Positions 2,307 through 61,103 of a DNA stretch of 64,000 bases are shown here, one piece after another. How positions within the stretch are numbered: position 1 is the stretch's first letter; the number at the start of each line of letters is the position of its first letter. The stretch lies in the IMG/VR virus record IMGVR_UViG_3300032268_000832, positions 1 to 64,000 of that record; one strand, written 5' to 3'. A model generated the notes under the pieces. That model saw only the letters and a program-made list of their open reading frames with translations. It ran no database searches and had not been told where the DNA came from. The translations under genes and the position numbers were made by a program.

Positions 2307-2394
2307 GGATTGGTATATTATAAAGGGATATAAAATATGGGCGGAAAGCAAAGAACAAGCCGAACAATTATATGAAAAAATAAAAAATTTTTAA
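2281..2394 (+). CDS. small hypothetical protein (37 aa, MVFLNSKGKDWYIIKGYKIWAESKEQAEQLYEKIKNF)
   Basis: Hand-translated; overlaps the previous gene's end and fills the gap before the next promoter. Confidence 0.45.
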   Translation: MVFLNSKGKDWYIIKGYKIWAESKEQAEQLYEKIKNF

Positions 2395-33068: not shown

Positions 33069-35570
33069 TTACGATTTTTTTGTTTTTTTAGGTTTTTCTA
33101 TTACAAGACTTTCTTGTTCTTTAGAATAAACAATCTTGATTGTATCACCTTCCTCAAACACTTCAGTAAGAATTTCATCGGCTACTAAGTCTTCAACATA
33201 ATGTTGAATCGCTCTGTTTAGCGGTCTAGCACCATACTCTTCGTCATAACCTTCTTTTGCTATAAAATCTAGAGCGCTATCAGAAATGTCTAAGTTAAAT
33301 TTCAATTCAGCTAAACGACTTTCTAAGTGTTTAATCTCAACATTGATAATTTCTCTAATATTTTCTTTTGAAAGAGAATTGAAAATGATAGCTTCGTCTA
33401 TACGGTTAAGAAATTCTGGTTTAAATTTCTTTTTAAGTGCTTTATCAATGATTGCTCTAGATTTAGCTTCTTCATTAAAAGCTGTTGAACCAGTATCAAA
33501 CCCCATAGTCTTACCAAAAGAGTTTGCCTCTTTAACACCGATGTTAGATGTCATAATGATAAGAGCATTTTTAAAGTTAACCTTACGTCCAAGACCATCA
33601 GTTAAATGACCTTCATCAAGTAATTGTAACAATAAGTTAAACACATCATCGTGAGCTTTTTCAATCTCATCAAATAAGATTACACAGTGTGGTTTACGTC
33701 TAACTTTTTCAGTTAACTGACCACCTTGGTCATAACCAACGTAACCTGGTGGTGGACCAACCAATCTAGACACAGAGTGTTTCTCCATGTATTCTGACAT
33801 ATCAACTCTAACAAGAGCATCAGCATCACCATAAACATGTTCGGCTAGCAATTTAGCAAGAAGTGTTTTACCAACACCTGTAGGGCCTAAGAAAATAAAT
33901 GAACCAACAGGTTTGTTTTTATCTTTGATACCAATTCTATTACGTTTGATTGCCTTAACAACTTTAACAACAGCATCGTCTTGACCGATTACTTTACCAC
34001 TCAATTCTTTGTCCATATTCATAAGACGTTTACTTTCTTGAGTTGAAATTTTGTTAAGTGGAATACCAGTCATCATAGAAACAACCTCAGAGATTAAATC
34101 AACACCAACTTCAGTTACTTTAACATCTAGACTTGTTTGCCAATCAACCATAGCTTTTTCTAAACTATCGGTAATTTCTTTTTCTTTATCGCGAAGTTTT
34201 GCAGCTTCTTCATATTGTTGTTTTTTTACGACTTCTGCTTTTTTCTCGTTTATAAGTTTTTTCTCTTCCTCAAGTTCTTTAATAACATCAGGTTTTTCAA
34301 CTGAAATATTAGTAGTAGCACCAGCTTCATCCAAAACATCGATAGCTTTGTCTGGCATTGCTCTATCCATAATGTATCTAGCTGATAATTTAACGCATTC
34401 TTCTATTGCTTCTTCAGTATATTTAACTTTGTGATGTTTTTCATACTTCTCTTTGATGTTCATCAAAATAGTTTTAGTTTGCTCTAAGGTTGGTTCTTCA
34501 ACTAGAACTTGTTGAAAACGTCTAGTTAACGCACCGTCTTTTTCAATGTTTTCTCGATATTCATCAAGTGTTGTAGCACCAATGATTTGTATTTCACCTC
34601 TAGCCAAAGCTGGTTTGAAAATATTAGACGCGTCTAAAGAACCGCTTGAGTTTCCAGCACCTACGATTGTATGTAACTCATCAATGAACAATACAATATC
34701 TGGATTGGCTTTACATTCTTCTAATATGGCTTTCATTCTCTCTTCAAATTGTCCACGATATTTTGTACCAGCAACAATTGAAGCTAAATCTAACATGTAT
34801 ATTTTTTTACCTGTTAGTGTTCTTGGAGCGTTACCCTCAAAAATAAGTTGGGCAAGTCCCTCTACTATGGCAGTTTTTCCAACACCAGGTTCACCAATAA
34901 GGACTGGATTGTTTTTCTTTCTTCTAGATAAAATTTGAGATACACGTTTTATCTCAATTTCTCTACCAACCACTGGGTCCACTTGTTCGTTTTCAACAGC
35001 CTTAGAGATATCTCTACAGAAATTATCTAAAACTGGTGTTTTTGTTTTTGAATCTTTGTTTTTAGGTTTTCTAAAAGATTCATTTTCATCATTTTCATCA
35101 TTGCTAAAAGCACTGTTTTTGTGTTCGAATTTGTCCATATTTGTAACGGTTTTTAAAAATTTGTTGTATGTTATACCAATTTCAGATAACATTTTAATTA
35201 ACGGTAATTTAGAGTCTAAAATACTAAGCATTACATGTGTCGTATCTATGTAGGTATCATTTAGTTTATCACAATGTTTGTCTAAGTTTTTGATTATAAC
35301 TTTCATTTCATCAGAAAATGGTAGACTTTTTCTGTTTGTACCTATTCTAGGGGTCAAGTCACTTTTTCTAACAAAATCAGATACTTTATCGTATACATCA
35401 AAAGTATCCACATTCATAATGTTTAACGCTCTAACACATTCGTTATCGTTGTCTATCATCATAGATAGAATCACATGTTCTGGTTTAATTTTATTATCAT
35501 CATGGTCTTTAGCTTCTCTAATGGCTTGATTCATGATAATTTTAACTTTTGGGTCTATTCTTCTATCCAT
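33069..35570 (-). CDS. clpC: ClpC-type ATP-dependent Clp protease ATPase subunit
   Basis: Clp-N domain; GEPGVGKT/IDELH; UVR-like middle domain QQYEEAAKLRDKE; GPTGVGKT/FDEIEKAH; MGF ClpP-docking loop; GARPL. Confidence 0.92.
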   Translation of the reverse strand: MDRRIDPKVKIIMNQAIREAKDHDDNKIKPEHVILSMMIDNDNECVRALNIMNVDTFDVYDKVSDFVRKSDLTPRIGTNRKSLPFSDEMKVIIKNLDKHCDKLNDTYIDTTHVMLSILDSKLPLIKMLSEIGITYNKFLKTVTNMDKFEHKNSAFSNDENDENESFRKPKNKDSKTKTPVLDNFCRDISKAVENEQVDPVVGREIEIKRVSQILSRRKKNNPVLIGEPGVGKTAIVEGLAQLIFEGNAPRTLTGKKIYMLDLASIVAGTKYRGQFEERMKAILEECKANPDIVLFIDELHTIVGAGNSSGSLDASNIFKPALARGEIQIIGATTLDEYRENIEKDGALTRRFQQVLVEEPTLEQTKTILMNIKEKYEKHHKVKYTEEAIEECVKLSARYIMDRAMPDKAIDVLDEAGATTNISVEKPDVIKELEEEKKLINEKKAEVVKKQQYEEAAKLRDKEKEITDSLEKAMVDWQTSLDVKVTEVGVDLISEVVSMMTGIPLNKISTQESKRLMNMDKELSGKVIGQDDAVVKVVKAIKRNRIGIKDKNKPVGSFIFLGPTGVGKTLLAKLLAEHVYGDADALVRVDMSEYMEKHSVSRLVGPPPGYVGYDQGGQLTEKVRRKPHCVILFDEIEKAHDDVFNLLLQLLDEGHLTDGLGRKVNFKNALIIMTSNIGVKEANSFGKTMGFDTGSTAFNEEAKSRAIIDKALKKKFKPEFLNRIDEAIIFNSLSKENIREIINVEIKHLESRLAELKFNLDISDSALDFIAKEGYDEEYGARPLNRAIQHYVEDLVADEILTEVFEEGDTIKIVYSKEQESLVIEKPKKTKKS

Positions 35571-47679: not shown

Positions 47680-49455
47680 ATGCTAACAGCACAAGAAATA
47701 TTTAAAGAGTATTCTAAATGTCTTATGAATCCAGTTTATGCGATTGAGAATTATTTAGAAACTTTTGATAAAACACAAGAAGGATTTGTACCTTTTAAAT
47801 TATTCCCTAGACAAAAGGAAATTATAGGTGCATATGAAAAACATAGATTTAATTTAGTTACTAAACCTCGACAAGCTGGTGTTTCGACTACAACCGCTGC
47901 TTATATGGCGATTAAAGTTGGTTGGGCTGATGAAGATAACCCAGAAGCTGTTTTGATTATTGCTAATAAGCAAGAATTAGCTTTTGAGTTTTTAGCTAAA
48001 ATTAAAGACTTTTTATCTCAATTACCTAGATGGGTTTGGGGTCACGAATACTACGGAAACCCTAAAAATGATGGTAAAACAATTTTCCTTACTGATTCTA
48101 AAAAAGAAATTAGATTACCTAATGGTAGTCGTGTTAAAGCAGTTGCAACATCTAAAGATGCCTTGCGTGGTTTTACACCTACGTTTCTTATTATGGATGA
48201 GGCTGCCTATATTGACAATGGTGCCGAAGTATTTGGTGCCGCTCTTACGGCATTAGGTACTGGGGGTAGAGCAACACTTATTTCTACACCTAACGGAATG
48301 GATTCTTTATATTTCAAAACTTACGACCAAGCTAAAACAAAAAAGAACAACTTTAATATCATTGAAATGAAATGGTATGAGGATTTGCGTTATAATAAAG
48401 ATTTAAGGTGGGTTAAGGGTGACGATGTAGAAAAAGAATTATATTTTTCATTTGAGTCTTACACAGCTAGGATTGAAGATGGGTGGAAACCTACATCTAC
48501 ATGGTACGAGCAAATGTGTATGGGTATGAACAATGATGCGCGTATGATTGCTCAAGAGCTTGATGTTTCATTTATAGGTTCTGGGGGTAATGTAATTAGT
48601 GAAGAATATATAGGTTTTCATGAAAAAAACAATGTGATTGAACCTAAGATTACTATGGGTCTTGAAAATGAAATATGGATTTGGGAAGAACCACAAGCTG
48701 GTCATCAATATATAATGGGTGTCGATGTATCTAGAGGTGATGGTGAAGATAGTTCTACGATAGTTATAATTGATTTCACTACTATGGAACAAGTCATGGA
48801 ATATCAAGGTAAAATACAACCAGATTTATTAGCTCAAATAGCAGAAGAATACGGTGAGTTATATGAAGCATATACTGTTGTCGATGTAACTGGAGGTATG
48901 GGTGTTTCAACTGTTCTTAAATTGTTGGAATTTAATTATAAGCGTTTGCATTATGATGACGCTAGTGGTAAAATATTATCAGCTAGACAAAGAGAATTAA
49001 CTAGTTATAATCAAAAGGATAAAATCCCAGGATTCCACGCCACAAATGTTCGTTTACCTATGATTTCAAATTTAGAATATAAAATTAGAACCAATGCTAT
49101 TAAAATTCGTTCTAGTAGACTTATTTCTGAAATGAAAACGTTTATTTATAAAAATGGTAGACCAGACCACATGGAAGGTTATCATGATGATTTACTTATG
49201 TCGTTAGCGATGTGTTTATGGGTTATGGAACATTCGTTTAAAAAATTAGAAAGACTAGAAAAACAAAATAAAGCAATTTTAAATAGTTGGTTGAATGGAG
49301 CTACTTCAAGTAGTTTACCTACCGTAACAGAAAGAGACCAAAATACTGGTGTTGTGACAAAAGTAGTTAACACTAACCACCCAGCTTATAAAAACGTTCA
49401 AGACCCTAGAGGTCAATATTCGTGGTTATTTTCTAAACCAGCAAATATGAGGTAA
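47680..49455 (+). CDS. terL: terminase large subunit (T4 gp17-like)
   Basis: KPRQAGVST, LIMDEAA, LISTPNG, nuclease MGVDVSRG.G.DSS, HDDLLMS. Confidence 0.95.
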   Translation: MLTAQEIFKEYSKCLMNPVYAIENYLETFDKTQEGFVPFKLFPRQKEIIGAYEKHRFNLVTKPRQAGVSTTTAAYMAIKVGWADEDNPEAVLIIANKQELAFEFLAKIKDFLSQLPRWVWGHEYYGNPKNDGKTIFLTDSKKEIRLPNGSRVKAVATSKDALRGFTPTFLIMDEAAYIDNGAEVFGAALTALGTGGRATLISTPNGMDSLYFKTYDQAKTKKNNFNIIEMKWYEDLRYNKDLRWVKGDDVEKELYFSFESYTARIEDGWKPTSTWYEQMCMGMNNDARMIAQELDVSFIGSGGNVISEEYIGFHEKNNVIEPKITMGLENEIWIWEEPQAGHQYIMGVDVSRGDGEDSSTIVIIDFTTMEQVMEYQGKIQPDLLAQIAEEYGELYEAYTVVDVTGGMGVSTVLKLLEFNYKRLHYDDASGKILSARQRELTSYNQKDKIPGFHATNVRLPMISNLEYKIRTNAIKIRSSRLISEMKTFIYKNGRPDHMEGYHDDLLMSLAMCLWVMEHSFKKLERLEKQNKAILNSWLNGATSSSLPTVTERDQNTGVVTKVVNTNHPAYKNVQDPRGQYSWLFSKPANMR

Positions 49456-49504: not shown

Positions 49505-51577
49505 ATGGCAAAAGATAATTTAACAATATTTCAAAAATTAAACAGAGTTGTTAACCCTGATTATAATCCACCACAAAAACAAACAACACAAAGATTTAAT
49601 TTGGGTGGTAATGAATTGCTTAAAACTACTAGCAAACAAGAATATGAAACAGCAAAATTACAAGCTCAACAAAATAAGTATTTACAAAGTACTTGGAAAC
49701 GTGTTGAAAATGGTTTGTTTCAACAATCTATAAATTACGAAACTACACGTGTTGGTTCTTACGCTGATTTTGAAGCCATGGAATTTTACCCAACAATCGC
49801 AGCCGCTTTAGACGTAATGATGGAAGAATCAACTACTGTTAATGACAGAGGTAGAGTTCTTAACATTTATTCTGATAGTAAGCGTGTTAAGGGTATCCTT
49901 GAAGATTTATTCTTTAACCGTTTGGATTTACATACTACATTACCTATGTGGACAAGAAATACATGTAAATACGGTGATAATTTTGTTTATTTGAATATCA
50001 ACGATAGACAAGGTATTATTTCCGCAAAACAAATGCCTAACTACGAGATAGAACGTAGAGAAGCTGGTTTATATGATTTAGTTAGCGGTAGAGAATATTC
50101 TGACGACCAATCTGAAAATAGAGATAGAGTTAAATTTTACTGGAGAGGGCGAGACGTTGAATTTAATTCATGGCAAATTGCACATTTTCGTTTGTTAGGT
50201 GATGACAGACGTTTACCATACGGTACCAGTGTTTTAGAGAAAGCTAGACGTATTTGGAAACAACTTATCTTATCTGAAGATTCAATGCTTGTATATCGTG
50301 TTACTAGAGCACCAGAAAGACGTGTTTATAAAATATATGTAGGTAACATTGATGACGCTGATGTTGAACAATATGTAAACGCTATTGCTGATAGATTTAA
50401 GCGTATGCCAATTGTTGACCCTCAAACTGGTCAAATTGATTTAAGATATAATCAGCTTTCTAATGACCAAGATTTCTTTATCCCAGTTAGGGATGAAAGC
50501 GCACCTAACCCAATTGATACGTTGCCTGGAGCTTCAAACTTAGACCAAATTGCAGATATTGAATACTTACAGAGAAATTTATTTACAGCGTTGCGAGTAC
50601 CGAAACCATTTTTAGGTTTCGAAGAAGCAACTGGAGAGGGTAAAAATCTTGCTTTACAAGATATTCGTTTTTCGAGAACAATTAACCGTATTCAACAATC
50701 TATGTTACAAGAACTAAATAAATTAGCAATTATTCATTTATTCTTATTAGGTTTTGAAGATGATTTAGATAACTTTACACTTACGTTAAATAACCCATCC
50801 ACACAAGCTGAAATGCTTAAGGTTGAACATATGCAGGTAAAAGTTTCACTAGTTAAAGATTCTGTATCTGATATTGGTAACGGATTTGGTGTTATGTCAT
50901 GGACTAGAGCTCATAGAGATATATTGGGTTGGTCTGACGATGAAATTAAACAAGATTTACTAGAACAACGAATGGAAAAAGCAGCATCCGCTGAATTACA
51001 AAATACATCAGCTGTTATTAAACATACTGGTATGTTTGACGCTGTTGATAAAATATATGGTGATTACCAAGCAGCTCTTAAAGGTGCTCAAGGTGGTGAT
51101 GAAGCTGGCGCTGAAGGCGGCGGTGGAGGTGGTAGCTTTGGAGGCGGCGGTGGAGGCGGCTTCGGAGGTGGTGGTCTAGGTGGTGAAGATTTAGACTTTG
51201 GAGCAGAAGCTGGTGGTGAAGACGCAGAAGCTGGTGGTGACACAGGTGATTTTGGAGCAGAAGCTGGTGCAGAAGAACCTGCGGCTGGAGCTGAGACAAC
51301 ACCTGATGCTGGTACAACACCTGAAACACCAGAAGCTTTATCGGAATCATTAAATAAAACACAAAAACTTTTAAGTGAACAAAAAATAAAATTAGAAAAT
51401 CAATTAAAAGTAAGGGCTGAAAAATATCAAAAAAGATTTGTTGATGTGTTGGTAGAGTCGGTTAAAAAAAATGACAAAGAACATGATGTTAGAGTTAAAA
51501 TTTACGATAAAAACGTAAAGATTAACGAAGATGTTAATAATATGATAAATGACATAAATAAAATGTTAGATGAATAA
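49505..51577 (+). CDS. gp20: portal vertex protein (T4 gp20-like) with Gly/Glu-rich C-terminal extension
   Basis: LSEDSMLVYRVTRAPERRVYKIYVGN...IDTLPGASNL..I.DIEYLQRNLFTALRVP. Confidence 0.93.
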   Translation: MAKDNLTIFQKLNRVVNPDYNPPQKQTTQRFNLGGNELLKTTSKQEYETAKLQAQQNKYLQSTWKRVENGLFQQSINYETTRVGSYADFEAMEFYPTIAAALDVMMEESTTVNDRGRVLNIYSDSKRVKGILEDLFFNRLDLHTTLPMWTRNTCKYGDNFVYLNINDRQGIISAKQMPNYEIERREAGLYDLVSGREYSDDQSENRDRVKFYWRGRDVEFNSWQIAHFRLLGDDRRLPYGTSVLEKARRIWKQLILSEDSMLVYRVTRAPERRVYKIYVGNIDDADVEQYVNAIADRFKRMPIVDPQTGQIDLRYNQLSNDQDFFIPVRDESAPNPIDTLPGASNLDQIADIEYLQRNLFTALRVPKPFLGFEEATGEGKNLALQDIRFSRTINRIQQSMLQELNKLAIIHLFLLGFEDDLDNFTLTLNNPSTQAEMLKVEHMQVKVSLVKDSVSDIGNGFGVMSWTRAHRDILGWSDDEIKQDLLEQRMEKAASAELQNTSAVIKHTGMFDAVDKIYGDYQAALKGAQGGDEAGAEGGGGGGSFGGGGGGGFGGGGLGGEDLDFGAEAGGEDAEAGGDTGDFGAEAGAEEPAAGAETTPDAGTTPETPEALSESLNKTQKLLSEQKIKLENQLKVRAEKYQKRFVDVLVESVKKNDKEHDVRVKIYDKNVKINEDVNNMINDINKMLDE

Positions 51578-55680: not shown

Positions 55681-57510
55681 ATGTCACATTTATTGACTTC
55701 AGGACAAGTTGGTAACATCGGATTAAACCACATGAAGGCTATCCGTTTGGAAACACAACAAAAATGGGATTCTTTAGGGTTCTTAGACGGACTTAAAGGC
55801 CATGTAAAAGAAAATATCGCTCAGTTATATGAAAACCAAGCTTCTAGCTTGTTAACTGAAGCTACTACAGCTAATTCATCAGGTTCTTTCGAAACTGTTG
55901 TATTCCCAATTGTAAGAAGAGTTTTCTCTAAATTATTAGCTAATGACGTTGTATCTGTACAAGCTATGAACATGCCAATCGGTAAATTGTTCTTCTTTGT
56001 GCCGTTAACTTCAGAGCGTGTAAACGCTTCTGGTCAAGGTGGTGACCCATATGTTGACGGTGCTCAATATTCTGCTCACACTTCATTTGCAAATTACGGT
56101 TTACCTTCATGTGTTCAAACAACTGATGGTTGCGCTGTAACTCAGTGGATGGGTAAAAACTTATACGATTTATTCTACAATGATGGTTTGTTTGATAACT
56201 CTAAAGGTACGCTTACTATTAACACTGTATCTAATTTAAAAGTATATACATTATTAACTGGTGGTACTTTCTCAATAGTAACTGGTGGTTCAACTGTATT
56301 ACCAATCGCTGCTGATGGTTCAGTTAGAAACGTAATTGTTGCTCTTTCTGGTTTCTCAGCTGGTGCTGGTACTAATGGTAGAGAAGTATTGACAGGTCCT
56401 GATGGAAACGCTATGGATACTGAATCATTCTTAGCTTCATTAAAAGTTGTTGCTCCTGCTACATTATTAGATAGAGATGGTAACGCTGTTATCGGTATTG
56501 GTCAAGAAGTTCCTTTTAGACTTGTTACTCAAAGATATGGTGTTGGTATCGTAACTGGTCCAAACGTTGTTACCGATGGTAACGGTGTATGTTGGTTAGA
56601 ATTAGATTTAACTCACCCAGTTGGAACAACTGCTGTTGCTGGTGCTGCTGCTGCTGGTACAGCTACTTACGATGGTTATGTTGGTGCTTCTGCAACTACA
56701 TTTAGTTCATTCTCTGCTTTTACAGCTGCTTACGCTACTTATGCTAGTTTAGAGTTCGAAACAGAAATGGGTGAAGTATCATTCAGACTTGATGAAGTTG
56801 TTGTTTCTGTAGAAGAAAGAAAATTAAGAGCTACATGGTCTCCAGAGTTAGCGCAAGACGTTAGTGCATTCCACAACATCGACGCTGAAGCTGAATTAAC
56901 TGCAATGCTTTCTGAGCAAGTTGCTGCTGAAATTGACCGTGAAATCCTTAGAGATTTACGTAAAGCTGCTGCATGGCAATTACGTTGGGATTACAATGGA
57001 TGGAGAAAAGCTTCTTCTGCTGCGAGCCCATATACTCAAAAAGAGTGGAACCAAACTTTAATTACTAAATTAAACCAAATTTCAGCTCAAATCCATAAAT
57101 CTACACTTAGAGGTGGTGCTAACTTCATCGTTGTATCTTCAGAGATTTCTGCAATCTTCGACGATTTAGAATACTTCCACGTGTCAGACGCTAACCCAGA
57201 GCAAGACCAATACAACATGGGTATTGAGAGAATCGGTTCATTAGGTGGTAGATATCAAGTATATCGTGACCCATATGCACCAGCATACTCAATCATCATC
57301 GGTCACAAAGGGAAATCATTATTGGATACTGGATACATCTACGCTCCGTATGTGCCATTACAGTTGACTCCAACAATGTATAACCCATTCAACTTCGCTC
57401 CAGTGAAAGGTATCATGACTCGTTACGCTAAAAAAGTGGTTAACAACAGATTCTACGGACACTTGAGAGTTGACGGTGTACAAACATTCAACATCAACGA
57501 ATTAAGATAA
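55681..57510 (+). CDS. gp23: major capsid protein (T4 gp23-like)
   Basis: PIVRRVF..LLANDVVSVQAM; RKLRATWSPELAQDV.AFHNIDAEAEL; YAPYVPL; GIMTRY. Confidence 0.96.
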   Translation: MSHLLTSGQVGNIGLNHMKAIRLETQQKWDSLGFLDGLKGHVKENIAQLYENQASSLLTEATTANSSGSFETVVFPIVRRVFSKLLANDVVSVQAMNMPIGKLFFFVPLTSERVNASGQGGDPYVDGAQYSAHTSFANYGLPSCVQTTDGCAVTQWMGKNLYDLFYNDGLFDNSKGTLTINTVSNLKVYTLLTGGTFSIVTGGSTVLPIAADGSVRNVIVALSGFSAGAGTNGREVLTGPDGNAMDTESFLASLKVVAPATLLDRDGNAVIGIGQEVPFRLVTQRYGVGIVTGPNVVTDGNGVCWLELDLTHPVGTTAVAGAAAAGTATYDGYVGASATTFSSFSAFTAAYATYASLEFETEMGEVSFRLDEVVVSVEERKLRATWSPELAQDVSAFHNIDAEAELTAMLSEQVAAEIDREILRDLRKAAAWQLRWDYNGWRKASSAASPYTQKEWNQTLITKLNQISAQIHKSTLRGGANFIVVSSEISAIFDDLEYFHVSDANPEQDQYNMGIERIGSLGGRYQVYRDPYAPAYSIIIGHKGKSLLDTGYIYAPYVPLQLTPTMYNPFNFAPVKGIMTRYAKKVVNNRFYGHLRVDGVQTFNINELR

Positions 57511-57727: not shown

Positions 57728-58489
57728 ATGAAAAAATTAATAAAAAAGTTAATTAGAGAAAGTTTAGAAGACATCGCTGGTTTTACAAACATAACACCAG
57801 AGGAACGCAAAGAAATCGATAGAAGATATAAAGAGTTTGTTTTATCTGATACTGAAAGCGCTGTTAAAGCTAAAAAACAACTTGACCATTACAATAAGGT
57901 AATAAGCGACCCAAAATTTGCCAACCAAGAATGGATTCCAAAAGCTTTTAAAGACCAAATTAGTGCATTACAAAATACAATTAATGCTGCTAAAAATAGA
58001 GATAGAAAAGCTGTGTATCATGAAATAGCTAGAAATTATTTATCATGGAAAAGATATGAAGATGATATAGTTAAAGCTAGAGAGTCTAGAACCTTTGGTA
58101 AAGAAGACATTATAAACCTATTTGTAGACGCTTTAGAAGGAGGTTCTAACTATTGGTATGAGATACGTCATTTACCTAACGAAGTTCGCTATAAAGCCAA
58201 GGAAATGGGTCAATCAGTATCTGAAGCTATAGGTGAGTATATTCTTAAAGGTGGTTATGTTCAATTTTATGATGCTGAAGAAGAATATGACGAAGATGAT
58301 TATACTGAAACACATTCAGATAATGGATTGTTGGGTACAGTAGATATGGATTCAATTCTAGAAGCAATAACAATAATAAAAAGAGATTACCCAGATGTTT
58401 GGGAAAATATACTTGATGAGCAATACGATGCAAACGATGCTGATATATTTTTACAATTATGCGTTATGGGTGATGTAGTATTTGGTTAA
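57728..58489 (+). CDS. putative internal head protein (MKKLIKKLIRE; start corrected)
   Basis: Late promoter at 57716; C-terminal ALEGGSNYW...DADIFLQLCVMGDVVFG domain. Confidence 0.8.
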   Translation: MKKLIKKLIRESLEDIAGFTNITPEERKEIDRRYKEFVLSDTESAVKAKKQLDHYNKVISDPKFANQEWIPKAFKDQISALQNTINAAKNRDRKAVYHEIARNYLSWKRYEDDIVKARESRTFGKEDIINLFVDALEGGSNYWYEIRHLPNEVRYKAKEMGQSVSEAIGEYILKGGYVQFYDAEEEYDEDDYTETHSDNGLLGTVDMDSILEAITIIKRDYPDVWENILDEQYDANDADIFLQLCVMGDVVFG

Positions 58490-58490
58490 T

Positions 58491-59135
58491 ATGAAAAAAA
58501 TATTTTTAATAATAACATTGTTCATGACAATGAACGTGTTTTCACAAACAGTTACAACAGATAATAAACTAATAATACCTCACGGGGACATTACGTTGTA
58601 TTTAACGAAAGATACATGTGCTTTGTTATCTAAACATGTTTTAAAGTATTCGAGCTTTCTAAAGCTTGATAAAGAGCGTGATAATCGTTGGTTTCAAGAT
58701 ACGTATAAGGGTAGATATTATAAAGACGCATATTTGAAAACTGGATATGATATTGGTCATCTAACACCGTCGCACATTACATCTTATGATAACGAATTAA
58801 ACCATATGTCTTTTAGCTTGTTCAATGCAGCGCCACAGTTGGCTGGATTTAACAGAGGTAAATGGGCCCAGATGGAAGGAGATGTTGAACGCATAATATC
58901 TGATAACAAACAAGATGTTGTTATTATTACTGGTGTTATATACGACCCAAACAACATAAGGTTTATGGGTAAATCTAGAATTCCTATACCATCAGCATTT
59001 TTTAAGGTTTTATTCATGAACGGTAAAACACAATGTTGGGTTGGTTCAAATATTAATGGTTTGATAGTGACTATTACTTTAAAGGATTTAAACGAATTAT
59101 TCAAAAAGAACAAAATGAATTTAACAATACAATAA
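58491..59135 (+). CDS. secreted DNA/RNA non-specific endonuclease (NucA/Serratia type)
   Basis: Signal MKKIFLIITLFMTMNVFS; YDIGHL, PQ..GFNRGKW..ME, IP..FFKV. Confidence 0.85.
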   Translation: MKKIFLIITLFMTMNVFSQTVTTDNKLIIPHGDITLYLTKDTCALLSKHVLKYSSFLKLDKERDNRWFQDTYKGRYYKDAYLKTGYDIGHLTPSHITSYDNELNHMSFSLFNAAPQLAGFNRGKWAQMEGDVERIISDNKQDVVIITGVIYDPNNIRFMGKSRIPIPSAFFKVLFMNGKTQCWVGSNINGLIVTITLKDLNELFKKNKMNLTIQ

Positions 59136-59657
59136 ATGAAAAATTTGATTAAACAATTACTTCGAGAAAATCTTTTAAGCGAGGTTAGTGATGATATTTA
59201 TGAAATAATTAGAACCCAATACCCTAATGCTAGAATTATGATGGAAGCTAGAGGTTCTGTTGATGGTGATAAGATAATATATAAACCTAAACAACAACCT
59301 GATAAACCTATGGCTAAACCTTTTGGATTATGGTATTCTATAGGTACTGAATGGATTGATTGGGTAAGAATGGAAATGCCACAATGGGAACGTGACCACG
59401 CATTTCTTTTGGATATTGATGATAGTAGATTATTAAAAATTAATACTTATGAAGATTTAAAATTATTTAATGAAGAATATGTTATTGATAATTATTATGT
59501 TGATTGGAAAAGAGTTAGTGAAAAATATGGTGGTATAGAAATAGTACCATATATTTATGAAGCTAGATATGAAATGCTTTGGTATTATACGTGGGATGTA
59601 GCTTCTGGTTGTATATGGGCACCTAATATGCTTAAAAAATCAAAATTAATACAATAA
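59136..59657 (+). CDS. putative internal head protein (MKNLIKQLLRE), possibly ADP-ribosyltransferase-like
   Basis: Shared motif; KPFGLWYS...DW..V...Y.GI...WDVASGCIW. Confidence 0.6.
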   Translation: MKNLIKQLLRENLLSEVSDDIYEIIRTQYPNARIMMEARGSVDGDKIIYKPKQQPDKPMAKPFGLWYSIGTEWIDWVRMEMPQWERDHAFLLDIDDSRLLKINTYEDLKLFNEEYVIDNYYVDWKRVSEKYGGIEIVPYIYEARYEMLWYYTWDVASGCIWAPNMLKKSKLIQ

Positions 59658-59680
59658 AAAAGGGCCATATGGCCCTTTTT
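59657..59680. terminator. bidirectional terminator
   Basis: AAAAAGGGCCATATGGCCCTTTTT. Confidence 0.85.
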
Positions 59681-59681
59681 A

Positions 59682-60725
59682 TATATACGTTAACTCGATT
59701 AATTATTTATTATGCTTTTGTACCGCAACTAGCACAGAACTTGTGTCCTTTACCTAATTTGGCACCACAGTTTGTGCAATATCTTTTTACATTGATATCT
59801 TCAACTGTGTTAACTTTTTGAGATACTGGAAGCAACTTAGCTTCAATAGTATAAAAAGCAAAATATTCAAAATCTTTATTTACTGTTTTGAATTTTTGGT
59901 CAGAATCAGAACCTTCTTCAACTCTACCAGTTTCAATTGATTTAGATTTCTTAGCAACCCCTTTAGTTAGATTTAAAGGTGTTTCAACACTTTTTTCAGT
60001 TTGCATCCAATCCATCGTTGCTGAACCGTCATGTACGCTTGAACTATAAAACGCGCTAGTTGATAAATTACTACTACCTCCAATGATTGTGTTAGTGGTT
60101 GTGAAGGTGTTAGTTATTGGTGTAGTTGAACCATAAACGTAACCACCAGTGTTAGTGTTATCGTAACGGATAATACCTTGGTCGTAGTTTTGTCCACCCC
60201 AGATATCTCTAGTACCACCAATTCTTAATATTGGGTTTCTTGGTCTAGGTTTTGACTCTCTGTAAAATTGAACCTTGAAATCACCATTATTTACTATTGC
60301 TTCTTTCACTTCTTGAGTGTTAGCTACTTCGTATGTGTCGAATAAGAATTTTTTGGCAACGTCTAAGTATCTATCTAAGAATACACGTTGACCTGGGCTC
60401 AATACAAGACCACCCTGTGAGATAACATTTCCGTTAAGTGTAATTTTAGCAAGTACAGATTCCGTAGTTGGATTGAAAAGTTCAATCTGGAACTCTTGCC
60501 CTTTTTGTAAATAATAAGTTGGCAAATCACCTTCTTTTTTGTAAAGTTTAACTCTACTTTTGTTCACAGCAATGTTTGCTGTTGGCATTTTTGGTGCCAC
60601 ATAGTTTAATTGTTTCATTTTTAATTAACTTTTAATTTTTGTTATTATTGTACCAATTTCTTTATTGCCTAGACAACTCTAAAGCCTATTAAGACTCGAA
60701 ACCAATACGTGAGTTAACGTATATA
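59682..60725. repeat. 15 bp perfect inverted repeat flanking one gene
   Basis: TATATACGTTAACTC (59682-59696) / GAGTTAACGTATATA (60711-60725). Confidence 0.85.
59710..60618 (-). CDS. conserved protein with C-terminal zinc ribbon
   Basis: YCTNCGAKL.KGHKFCASCG; beta-rich N-terminal domain. Confidence 0.85.
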   Translation of the reverse strand: MKQLNYVAPKMPTANIAVNKSRVKLYKKEGDLPTYYLQKGQEFQIELFNPTTESVLAKITLNGNVISQGGLVLSPGQRVFLDRYLDVAKKFLFDTYEVANTQEVKEAIVNNGDFKVQFYRESKPRPRNPILRIGGTRDIWGGQNYDQGIIRYDNTNTGGYVYGSTTPITNTFTTTNTIIGGSSNLSTSAFYSSSVHDGSATMDWMQTEKSVETPLNLTKGVAKKSKSIETGRVEEGSDSDQKFKTVNKDFEYFAFYTIEAKLLPVSQKVNTVEDINVKRYCTNCGAKLGKGHKFCASCGTKA

Positions 60726-60764
60726 ATATAAATATAATAATTTTTTTTTTATTTGTCAATACTT

Positions 60765-61103
60765 TTATTGAAAATCTGAACCCATTTCACATAATGTTGA
60801 TTGGATTTGGTGCCAATAAGTATCAGCTTCATCTGGCATTGAATCCCCAGACATACCATATTGTTTTATTTCACCATCAATTTCAATTTGTTCGTTTTTT
60901 AAATTTTTCAAAGGCGCGTAAATTCTTTTCATTACTTTTGTCTTTGTCGCTTCATCCATATCTTTTGTGGCAGCTTTTACATATCTAATTGCTTCGGTGT
61001 ATGAACCTATAGTCATTTTATTACATAGTGATTCCATCGCTGAATTCATTTCTTGACCATCAATAAGTTCCTCTCTTAGTAATTTTTTTATAAATTTTTT
61101 CAT
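60765..61103 (-). CDS. putative internal head protein (MKKFIKKLLRE)
   Basis: Shared motif; coupled to the upstream structural gene. Confidence 0.8.
   Translation of the reverse strand: MKKFIKKLLREELIDGQEMNSAMESLCNKMTIGSYTEAIRYVKAATKDMDEATKTKVMKRIYAPLKNLKNEQIEIDGEIKQYGMSGDSMPDEADTYWHQIQSTLCEMGSDFQ

Follow-up and report, generated by a model that had tools for sequence, protein, structure and literature searches.

Our analysis indicates that a conserved gene of freshwater jumbo phages is transcribed into an mRNA whose first 10-15 bases are predicted to pair with bases just upstream of its terminator. Relatives retain this pairing through many matched changes. The complementarity is therefore real, and end-to-end closure of this kind is rarely documented for bacterial-type mRNAs. 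The most likely role of the pairing, inferred by analogy, is to stabilize the transcript.

The element was found in a 64,000-nucleotide stretch (the window) of a 306-kb phage genome that is 86% complete (IMG/VR record IMGVR_UViG_3300032268_000832). A perfect 15-nt inverted repeat brackets a gene encoding a 302-amino-acid protein. The 5' arm TATATACGTTAACTC and its 3' complement GAGTTAACGTATATA are 100% complementary, are separated by 1014 nt, and are the only two zero-mismatch copies in the window. The 5' arm starts 3 nt after the octamer TATATTTA of a TTGACA-17-TATATT promoter (11 of 12 consensus matches), and the 3' arm ends 1 nt before a strong terminator hairpin (10 pairs, 5 G-C, T-run). 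The observation made in the initial annotation is thus correct in every coordinate, although the 8-mer that it called a late promoter (60728-60735) overlaps the downstream promoter element. The label "late" is not supported; the motif looks like a host sigma-A type promoter (TTG-N19-20-TAnnTTT), and about 17 similar promoters occur genome-wide. The features of the locus are listed in Table 1.

Table 1. Features of the locus, in coordinates of the window
Position	Strand	Feature	Details
60754-60759	-	Promoter upstream element	TTGACA (-35 / Bacteroidota -33 TTG); TTGAC conserved in most homologous loci
60729-60736	-	Promoter downstream element	TATATTTA; -10 TATATT at 60736-60731; resembles the Bacteroidota -7 motif TAnnTTTG; nearly invariant in the relatives
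60711-60725	-	5' arm	UAUAUACGUUAACUC; at or within a few nt of the predicted transcript 5' end
60705-60722	-	Local hairpin	ATACGT 60722-60717 with ACGTAT 60710-60705; -3.9 kcal/mol
60650-60708	-	Structured leader RNA	P1: 60708 and 60707-60701 pair with 60657-60651 and 60650, and 60699-60698 pair with 60660-60659; P2: hairpin at about 60697-60682; P3: hairpin at 60677-60664; UUUAGAG and AAAG conserved and unpaired
60619-60649	-	Stretch before the ATG	A-rich, unstructured, no Shine-Dalgarno sequence
59710-60618	-	ORF, 302 aa	Predicted N-terminal beta-sandwich, low-confidence (probably disordered) middle, C-terminal zinc ribbon
59682-59696	-	3' arm	GAGUUAACGUAUAUA; 13 nt after the stop codon
59657-59680	.	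Intrinsic terminator hairpin	AAAAAGGGCC-AUAU-GGCCCUUUUU; palindromic with A and U tracts, probably bidirectional
59136-59657	+	Convergent gene	Probably served by the same terminator

On this genome alone, the repeat cannot be distinguished from chance. The genome carries 12 perfect inverted repeats of 15 nt or more with arms 30-3000 nt apart, whereas simulated first-order Markov genomes carry 3-10 (mean 5.25). However, the repeat is the top and only non-low-complexity match between a promoter-proximal and a terminator-proximal segment in the genome. A scan of all 56 predicted terminators against upstream DNA produced no second convincing case, the next hits being A/T low-complexity words, which argues against a genome-wide design. 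Searches with RNAduplex in wide windows were swamped by A/U-rich promoter and terminator tracts, and ungapped helix scoring in tight windows was therefore used for comparisons.

Comparison with relatives shows that the pairing is selected. Of 110 distinct homologous loci, 92 have a helix at the same two places, in 69 distinct sequence versions, with mismatch-free lengths of 8-18 bp and mostly 10-16 bp. Examples are ATGTGTTAACTC/GAGTTAACACAT, ATCGTGATTGA/TCAATCACGAT, AGACCTTGTGGTTGA/TTAATCACAAGGTCT and TGAAACCTTGTTG/TAACAAGGTTTCA; in a 462-kb phage whose protein is 32% identical, the pair is TCTCACTTTGTT/AACAAAGTGAGA. The 3' UTR of each locus pairs better with its own 5' arm than do those of other loci (mean score of 26.7 versus 19.2), and none of 50,000 permutations using one representative per arm type reaches this value (p about 2e-5). 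By column, 94% of cells pair compared with 76% in shuffles, and 168 cells are changed on both sides compared with 44 +/- 6 (0 of 500 shuffles). Because the register was chosen per locus by the best helix, the percentage paired is biased upward, and the shuffles, together with slid registers that give 31-40% paired, are the meaningful figures. A chance repeat conserved only by slow divergence of the flanks is refuted by these tests, given that the arms differ at most positions between clades and yet each pair stays complementary. The initial annotation had named arms that are not conserved or do not covary, together with a transcription start downstream of the 5' arm, as grounds for rejection; on the first count, the opposite was found.

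The arms follow the transcript ends rather than the ORF. Where homing endonuclease genes have been inserted after the stop codon (loci L021, L023, L037, L038 and L053 of our set) or in the leader (L022), matching arms still sit next to the promoter and the terminator. The helix begins 3-4 nt after the TAnnTTTN promoter element in 65 of 92 loci, which is at the predicted start site, although the complementarity often starts 1-3 nt upstream of where a canonical start site would fall. The 3' arm lies 4-21 nt after the stop codon. Interior non-Watson-Crick positions are mostly G-U on the mRNA strand, with about 7 independent cases compared with 1-2 A-C. This excess is small (one-sided p about 0.04-0.09), and a cell-level count over columns is less lopsided.

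These data bear on whether the repeat acts as DNA, either as recombination sites of an invertible segment, which the initial annotation had considered less likely, or as two operators for one DNA-binding protein that loops the gene. The inverted repeats of an invertible element also co-evolve, the 5' arm occupies the +1 to +15 position typical of an operator, and the encoded protein has a zinc ribbon. However, all 92 loci with the helix at the expected place, drawn from many samples, have the order promoter, arm, leader, ATG, and no strand-change joint at the arms appears in the contigs aligned to the locus. Moreover, no serine or tyrosine recombinase (PF00239 or PF00589) was found in the 86%-complete genome, although a host enzyme cannot be excluded. 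Sixty-nine different arm sequences would require as many changes of protein specificity, G-U type mismatches are tolerated, and the arms track the promoter and the terminator across gene insertions. A DNA-level role is therefore very unlikely.

The approximately 60-nt core of the leader is a separate, strongly covarying three-helix RNA. In this structure, 98% of cells are paired, 16 of 20 pairs are changed on both sides, and none of 500 shuffles is as good. The same fold is the minimum-energy structure. None of 4227 Rfam families matches the leader or the arms; the best hits are terminator look-alikes that score 15-23 bits against gathering thresholds of 39 or more, and nothing hits the leader. 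The leader occurs once in this genome and, in the loci examined, always ahead of this gene. Thus, the suggestion in the initial annotation that the leader has further hairpins holds. In contrast, the competing local hairpin that it proposed has no covariation support: it pairs in 81% of cells, which equals the shuffled value (80.5%), with one compensatory cell, and its 3' strand is the 5' strand of P1.

The protein has 1555 relatives, and relatives occur in Lak megaphages and other huge phages. Pfam identifies only the zinc ribbon (PF13240, residues 280-301, E 4e-6), PHROGs yields nothing useful, and a PDB sequence search yields nothing. Foldseek gives weak matches to MSP/Ig-like beta-sandwiches (best E 5e-3) and to uncharacterized viral proteins, and the Atlas returns hypothetical viral clusters. 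Near and distant DNA searches of the phage collection returned only an 84-nt coding match to Lak phages. In the Lak homologs (35% identity, TAG read through), neither the leader nor the helix is recognizable. Several other distant clades keep the leader but show no terminal helix, so the helix is dispensable for the gene.

Contigs of this gene lie in four metatranscriptomes from four studies, and these cover the ORF as far as 59694. However, they are assembled contigs whose ends are uninformative and that give neither strand nor level, and one run has contigs that cross the promoter, which means read-through or DNA.

We favor, with a probability of roughly 0.6, a model in which the gene is transcribed as a roughly 1.07-kb monocistronic mRNA from a host-type promoter to an intrinsic terminator, and in which pairing of its extreme 5' end with the 3' UTR closes the mRNA into a panhandle. 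The duplex is worth -18.1 kcal/mol, and co-folding of the two UTRs gains 19 kcal/mol and yields the terminal helix, P1-P3, and the terminator. The most likely effect is protection. A 5' terminus buried in a duplex would hinder 5'-end-dependent decay (pyrophosphate removal, 5'-monophosphate-stimulated endonuclease, or 5' exonuclease), and the adjacent terminator would block 3' exonucleases, giving a long-lived, highly productive mRNA for a protein encoded beside the head-gene module. Our analysis establishes the complementarity, its positions, its covariation, the leader structure, and the presence of the gene in RNA libraries, whereas formation of the pairing in vivo, initiation of the transcript at the arm, and any effect on decay or translation, including stabilization, are inferred. 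The interpretation given in the initial annotation is therefore partly supported: the panhandle idea holds, but the competing hairpin and inversion are unsupported, and RNase III processing, circularization, and autoregulation by the zinc-ribbon protein remain speculation.

The same panhandle might instead act mainly in translation, by bringing terminating ribosomes next to the leader for re-initiation, or as a completion checkpoint that lets the leader adopt its active fold only once the 3' UTR has been made. Folded alone, the 5' part of the window's transcript forms the local hairpin and loses the base of P1, whereas folded with the 3' UTR it forms the conserved P1-P3. Also, the stop codon is close to the 3' arm, and the absence of a Shine-Dalgarno sequence makes initiation dependent on leader context. 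However, the alternative hairpin is weak and does not covary, the leader also folds correctly without the arm, and clades that lack the helix keep the leader. We consider this role doubtful. More speculatively, the terminal helix and the leader might together form one device that senses transcript completion. In this view, the leader would bind a phage or host factor, possibly the zinc-ribbon protein itself, and closure would decide whether that site is presented, coupling the yield of a head-module protein to mRNA integrity. Such closed-loop mRNA logic is not known to have been described in bacteria or phages, but this possibility is unlikely on present evidence.

A further possibility is that the duplex is a processing site cut by host RNase III, either to release the mRNA from read-through transcripts or to trigger its decay, as in Staphylococcus aureus icaR and the T7 early mRNAs. 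Contigs that cross the promoter may reflect longer transcripts, and Bacteroides encodes RNase III. However, the mismatch-free helices (8-18 bp, mostly 10-12 bp) are shorter than the roughly two helical turns typical of RNase III substrates. In addition, the 5' arm abuts the promoter at the predicted start site rather than lying inside a precursor, the pairing does not touch the ribosome-binding region, and the phage encodes no RNase III. This reading is improbable.

Long-range pairing between the two UTRs of a bacterial mRNA is known from only a handful of single-gene experiments (hbs, icaR, hilD) and has not had broad comparative support. In this uncultured jumbo-phage lineage of lakes, rivers, and seas, nature has in effect run the compensatory-mutation experiment dozens of times. 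The system offers a clean model for asking how end-to-end closure affects decay and translation in hosts that lack Shine-Dalgarno initiation, and its simple design (about 12 nt at each end) could be tried as a portable mRNA stabilizer. It also adds a new structured leader RNA to the catalog. Like r-protein leaders, the T4 gene 32 operator, and riboswitches, this leader is a conserved, covarying multi-helix structure in a 5' UTR with invariant unpaired nucleotides, but it matches no Rfam family and, in the loci examined, is found only ahead of this one phage gene.

The closest known system is the 5'/3'-UTR interaction of the Bacillus subtilis hbs mRNA (Braun, Durand & Condon 2017, PMC5737220), a short, monocistronic, highly expressed transcript. 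There, about 14 nt of perfect, A/U-rich complementarity (-19 kcal/mol) likewise joins the 5' UTR, next to a structured leader, to a site just upstream of the intrinsic terminator, and compensatory mutants showed that the pairing limits RNase cleavage and stabilizes the transcript. The phage case, whose host is probably a Bacteroidota bacterium with no Shine-Dalgarno use, is supported by covariation over about 90 loci rather than by experiment. In hbs, the 5' partner lies inside the leader, downstream of hairpin hp2, and overlaps an RNase Y site, and the 5' end itself is protected by local hairpins, whereas here the partner is the predicted extreme 5' end. In the S. aureus icaR mRNA (Ruiz de los Mozos et al. 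2013, PMC3868564), the 3' UTR motif UCCCCUG pairs with the Shine-Dalgarno region, blocks initiation, and creates an RNase III substrate, which is a repressive device. Here, the pairing lies about 90 nt upstream of the start codon, leaves the initiation region free, and involves the 5' terminus. A base-paired 5' terminus with little or no overhang, or two ends held together, also occurs in 5'-terminal stem-loops that stabilize bacterial mRNAs (for example, the Escherichia coli ompA leader), in terminal stems of stable RNAs, and in panhandles of segmented negative-strand RNA viruses. However, those stem-loops are local, stable-RNA stems belong to non-coding RNAs, and viral panhandles act as replication promoters, whereas in the phage mRNA 1 kb of translated sequence would lie inside the loop.

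The analyzed stretch is the first 64 kb of a single 306,463-bp contig (30.9% G+C) that represents a virus record rated 86% complete. DNA sequencing runs containing it come mostly from lake-water metagenomes. The gene of interest lies near a head module and encodes a 302-aa protein whose only Pfam match is a C-terminal zinc ribbon (PF13240, residues 280-301, E 4e-6). It is preceded by a predicted promoter, in which TTGACA and TATATT are separated by a 17-nt spacer, and is followed by a 10-pair hairpin with a T-run. The initial annotation reported that a 15-mer just after this promoter has a perfect complement just before the terminator, and this observation holds at every position. The small local hairpin that it described also exists.

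Coordinates of features in the window, in the complete genome and in homologous loci of relatives (L numbers)
Sequence	Position	Strand	Feature
Window	about 9213, 9660, 10133 (also 7561, 8725)		Repeated 5' region (CAAAACCAATTAAATTTATT...ATGA)
Window	33069-35570	-	Lon-like ATP-dependent protease, 833 aa
Window	47680-49455		Large terminase
Window	49505-51577		Portal
Window	55681-57510		Major head protein
Window	57728-58489	+	ORF starting with MKKxIKKLLREeL
Window	58482-59135	+	DNA/RNA non-specific endonuclease
Window	59136-59657	+	ORF starting with MKKxIKKLLREeL
Window	59680-59657		Predicted terminator hairpin
Window	59696-59682		3' arm, perfect complement of the 5' arm
Window	59710-60618	-	Gene for the 302-aa zinc-ribbon protein
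Window	60722-60717 with 60710-60705		Local hairpin ATACGT/ACGTAT
Window	60725-60711		5' arm, TATATACGTTAACTC
Window	60736-60731		TATATT
Window	60759-60754		TTGACA
Window	60765-61103	-	ORF starting with MKKxIKKLLREeL
Genome (G000)	53003, 78598, 136715, 208782, 237913, 285822 and others		Promoters TTGAC-N19-20-TA(G)TATATTT(G)
L021	3870-4679	-	Homing endonuclease gene (LAGLIDADG)
L021	4790-5434		DNA/RNA non-specific endonuclease
L022	2169-2867	+	Homing endonuclease gene (GIY-YIG)
L022	2877-2960		Partial second copy of the leader
L038	2655-3671	-	Homing endonuclease gene (GIY-YIG-like)
L038	3845-4609		ORF starting with MKKxIKKLLREeL
L053	3777-4874	-	Homing endonuclease gene (GIY-YIG-like)
L091 (LR756500)	1397-1511 and 2335-2375		Two pairs of complementary 5'/3' segments

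The wider sequence has several other features. Several otherwise different ORFs start with the same motif, MKKxIKKLLREeL, which may be a shared N-terminal module or targeting signal of a paralogous family. The non-specific endonuclease (PF01223, E 9e-29) has a hydrophobic N-terminus that looks like a signal peptide, and it is conserved near this locus in relatives, for example L021. The phage also encodes a Lon-like protease (phrog_4871, E 7e-253). A repeated 5' region precedes several small tandem genes, which look like an array of paralogues with conserved translation-start regions. The terminator downstream of the zinc-ribbon gene is a perfect 12+12 palindrome with A and T tracts on both sides, and it probably terminates both convergent genes. 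About 17 promoters of a similar form occur genome-wide and resemble the Bacteroidota sigma-A -33/-7 consensus. Together with start codons that lack a Shine-Dalgarno sequence, this points to a Bacteroidota host, although the host is inferred from these two features only. No alternative genetic code was used for the window.

The repeat is not meaningful by itself. The genome has 12 perfect inverted repeats of 15 nt or more with arms 30-3000 nt apart, and 12 first-order Markov genomes gave 3-10, with a mean of 5.25. What stands out is position. When the 35 nt ahead of each of the 56 predicted terminators were scanned against the 6 kb upstream, this pair was the longest hit and the only one that is not A/T low complexity. 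The design is therefore specific to this gene and is not a habit of the genome.

The protein has at least 1555 relatives in public metagenomes. We collected 80 loci from IMG/VR and 80 from metagenome contigs, plus homologues in Lak megaphages and other huge phages. After duplicates and truncated flanks were removed, 110 distinct loci remained, of which 92 have a helix at the same two places, in 69 different sequence versions. Mismatch-free lengths run from 8 to 18 bp and are mostly 10-16. The 5' strand starts 3-4 nt after the TAnnTTTN promoter element in 65 of the 92 loci, and the 3' strand starts 4-21 nt after the stop codon. In the 66 of the 92 loci where a G+C run of the terminator lies within the 45 nt examined after the stop codon, it usually follows the 3' strand by 6-10 nt. 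The arms change freely between clades but always together. A 462-kb phage at 32% protein identity (L091) has TCTCACTTTGTT/AACAAAGTGAGA. In this phage a second complementary pair, GTTAAGG/CCTTAAC, lies in non-nested order with the first, and the two may be alternative pairings or a pseudoknot-like closure.

Paired arms in the window and in nine homologous loci
Locus	5' arm	3' arm
Window	TATATACGTTAACTC	GAGTTAACGTATATA
L010	TAACGTTAACTC	GAGTTAACGTTA
L011	ATGTGTTAACTC	GAGTTAACACAT
L026	TTGCGTTAACTA	TAGTTAACGCAA
L060	ATCGTGATTGA	TCAATCACGAT
L059	ATGATTAACCC	GGGTTAATCAT
L072	AACGTGATTAAACTAG	TTAGTTTAATCACGTT
L077	AGACCTTGTGGTTGA	TTAATCACAAGGTCT
L165	TGAAACCTTGTTG	TAACAAGGTTTCA
L147	GTTAACCCGTT	AACGGGTTAAC

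In an alignment-free test, the best ungapped helix between a locus's own 5' and 3' windows scores 26.7 on average, against 19.2 for windows from different loci. With one representative per arm type (86), none of 50,000 permutations reached the observed mean, and the highest was 21.3. A similar test on the first 60 loci gave 0 of 20,000. In a column-based test, which is not tree-aware, 94% of cells pair against 76% in shuffles, and 168 cells are changed on both sides against 44 +/- 6 (0 of 500). The register was picked per locus by the best helix, which inflates the percentage paired, but the shuffle and permutation controls are not affected by this. Slid registers give 31-40% paired. Four columns carry three or four Watson-Crick pair types each, for example AU 30, UA 27, GC 25. 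We consider a chance repeat to be very unlikely.

The arms follow the transcript and not the ORF. Eight loci at first seemed to lack a partner, and for six of them the partner was found elsewhere in the locus. In L021, L023, L037, L038 and L053, a homing endonuclease gene sits on the opposite strand between the stop codon and the 3' arm. The matching 3' arm lies 0.85-1.2 kb further on, again directly before a terminator. In L022 the homing endonuclease gene sits inside the leader and is followed by a partial second copy of the leader, and the matching 5' arm lies about 0.9 kb upstream, directly after the promoter. Homing endonuclease genes (LAGLIDADG or GIY-YIG-like; also in L070 and L186) have invaded this transcription unit at two sites in different relatives. 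The complementarity is therefore tied to the start and end of the transcription unit.

Four arguments favor a function in RNA on the sense strand. First, the positions match the predicted +1 and the terminator. Second, among interior non-Watson-Crick positions in the core helix, G-U or U-G occurs in about seven independent lineages (the L009 group, L039, L061/L150, L071, L077, L149 and, nearer the helix end, L048). A-C or C-A occurs once or twice (L027, L164), and transversion mismatches occur in three or four. This excess is suggestive only, with a one-sided p of about 0.04-0.09, and the cell-level tally from the column-based test is less lopsided. Third, the sequence immediately next to the arm is demonstrably a selected RNA structure, as described below. 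Fourth, a DNA-level function, either as an invertible segment or as a pair of operators, fares poorly and appears improbable. All 92 loci have the same orientation, no serine or tyrosine recombinase was found in the 86%-complete genome, and an operator model would need dozens of specificity changes. RNA libraries from four studies contain near-identical contigs of the gene, and in two of these RNA runs (X15 and X17) they are essentially the only contigs in the 5.8 kb compared. However, contig ends cannot show transcript ends, and in a further run (X18) some contigs cross the promoter.

The roughly 95 nt between the arm and the ATG contain a conserved structure. In helix P1, G + UAUUGGU pairs with AUUGGUA + C, extended by UC/GA. 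This helix is accompanied by hairpins P2 and P3 and by invariant unpaired UUUAGAG and AAAG. RNAalifold predicts 20 pairs, 16 of them with changes on both sides. On 59 distinct sequences, 98.0% of cells pair against 87.0% in shuffles, and 152 cells are changed on both sides against 32 (0 of 500), whereas slid registers give 35-49% paired. The window's own leader adopts this fold as its minimum-energy structure, and no Rfam family matches it. A covariance model finds exactly one copy in the 306-kb genome. It also finds the leader in distant clades, including two or three huge phages but not the Lak phages. An exact leader motif hit 32 IMG/VR contigs. In 31 of them this gene follows, and the last hit is cut off by the end of the locus. 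Several distant clades (L153, L157, L159, L173, L089 and L090) retain the leader, with covariance-model E values from 5e-8 to 6e-3, but have no detectable 5'/3' helix. The leader and the helix are therefore separable modules, and the helix was gained or lost independently of the leader.

The initial annotation also proposed that the local hairpin competes with the long-range pairing. In the alignment the six pairs of this hairpin are standard in 80.8% of cells, shuffles give 80.5%, and only one cell is compensatory. Its 3' strand is the 5' strand of P1. In the window, the 5' part folded alone does use this hairpin at the expense of P1. Co-folding with the 3' UTR gives the terminal helix, P1-P3 and the terminator at -51.2 kcal/mol, against -32.0 for the two parts folded apart. 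A kinetic role in this lineage is possible, but there is no sign of selection for it. A translational or completion-sensing role for the closed RNA is conceivable but, in our estimate, unlikely.

AlphaFold predicts an N-terminal beta-sandwich (pLDDT about 80), a low-confidence middle (residues 125-245) and the zinc ribbon. Foldseek finds only weak MSP/Ig-like matches and uncharacterized viral proteins, and a profile search of PDB sequences finds nothing. The suggestion in the initial annotation that the protein could be autoregulatory remains conjecture.

Our best estimate, with a probability of roughly 0.62, is that the mRNA forms a stabilizing panhandle that buries its 5' terminus. The complementarity, its placement, its covariation and the leader structure come directly from the sequence comparisons, whereas the start of the transcript at the arm, the formation of the helix in cells and its stabilizing effect are inferred. 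The interpretation in the initial annotation is supported in part: its core idea, that the transcript may close into a panhandle, is supported by the covariation of the arms, whereas the competing hairpin is not supported. Processing by a double-strand-specific RNase is a doubtful alternative. With respect to known systems, the icaR case (PMC3868564) is repressive and targets the Shine-Dalgarno region, which does not fit here. The closest tested precedent is the 14-bp, -19 kcal/mol interaction in Bacillus subtilis hbs mRNA, which joins the 5' UTR to a site just upstream of the terminator. This interaction restrains RNase Y cleavage and stabilizes the primary transcript, and compensatory mutants rescue the defects (PMC5737220).
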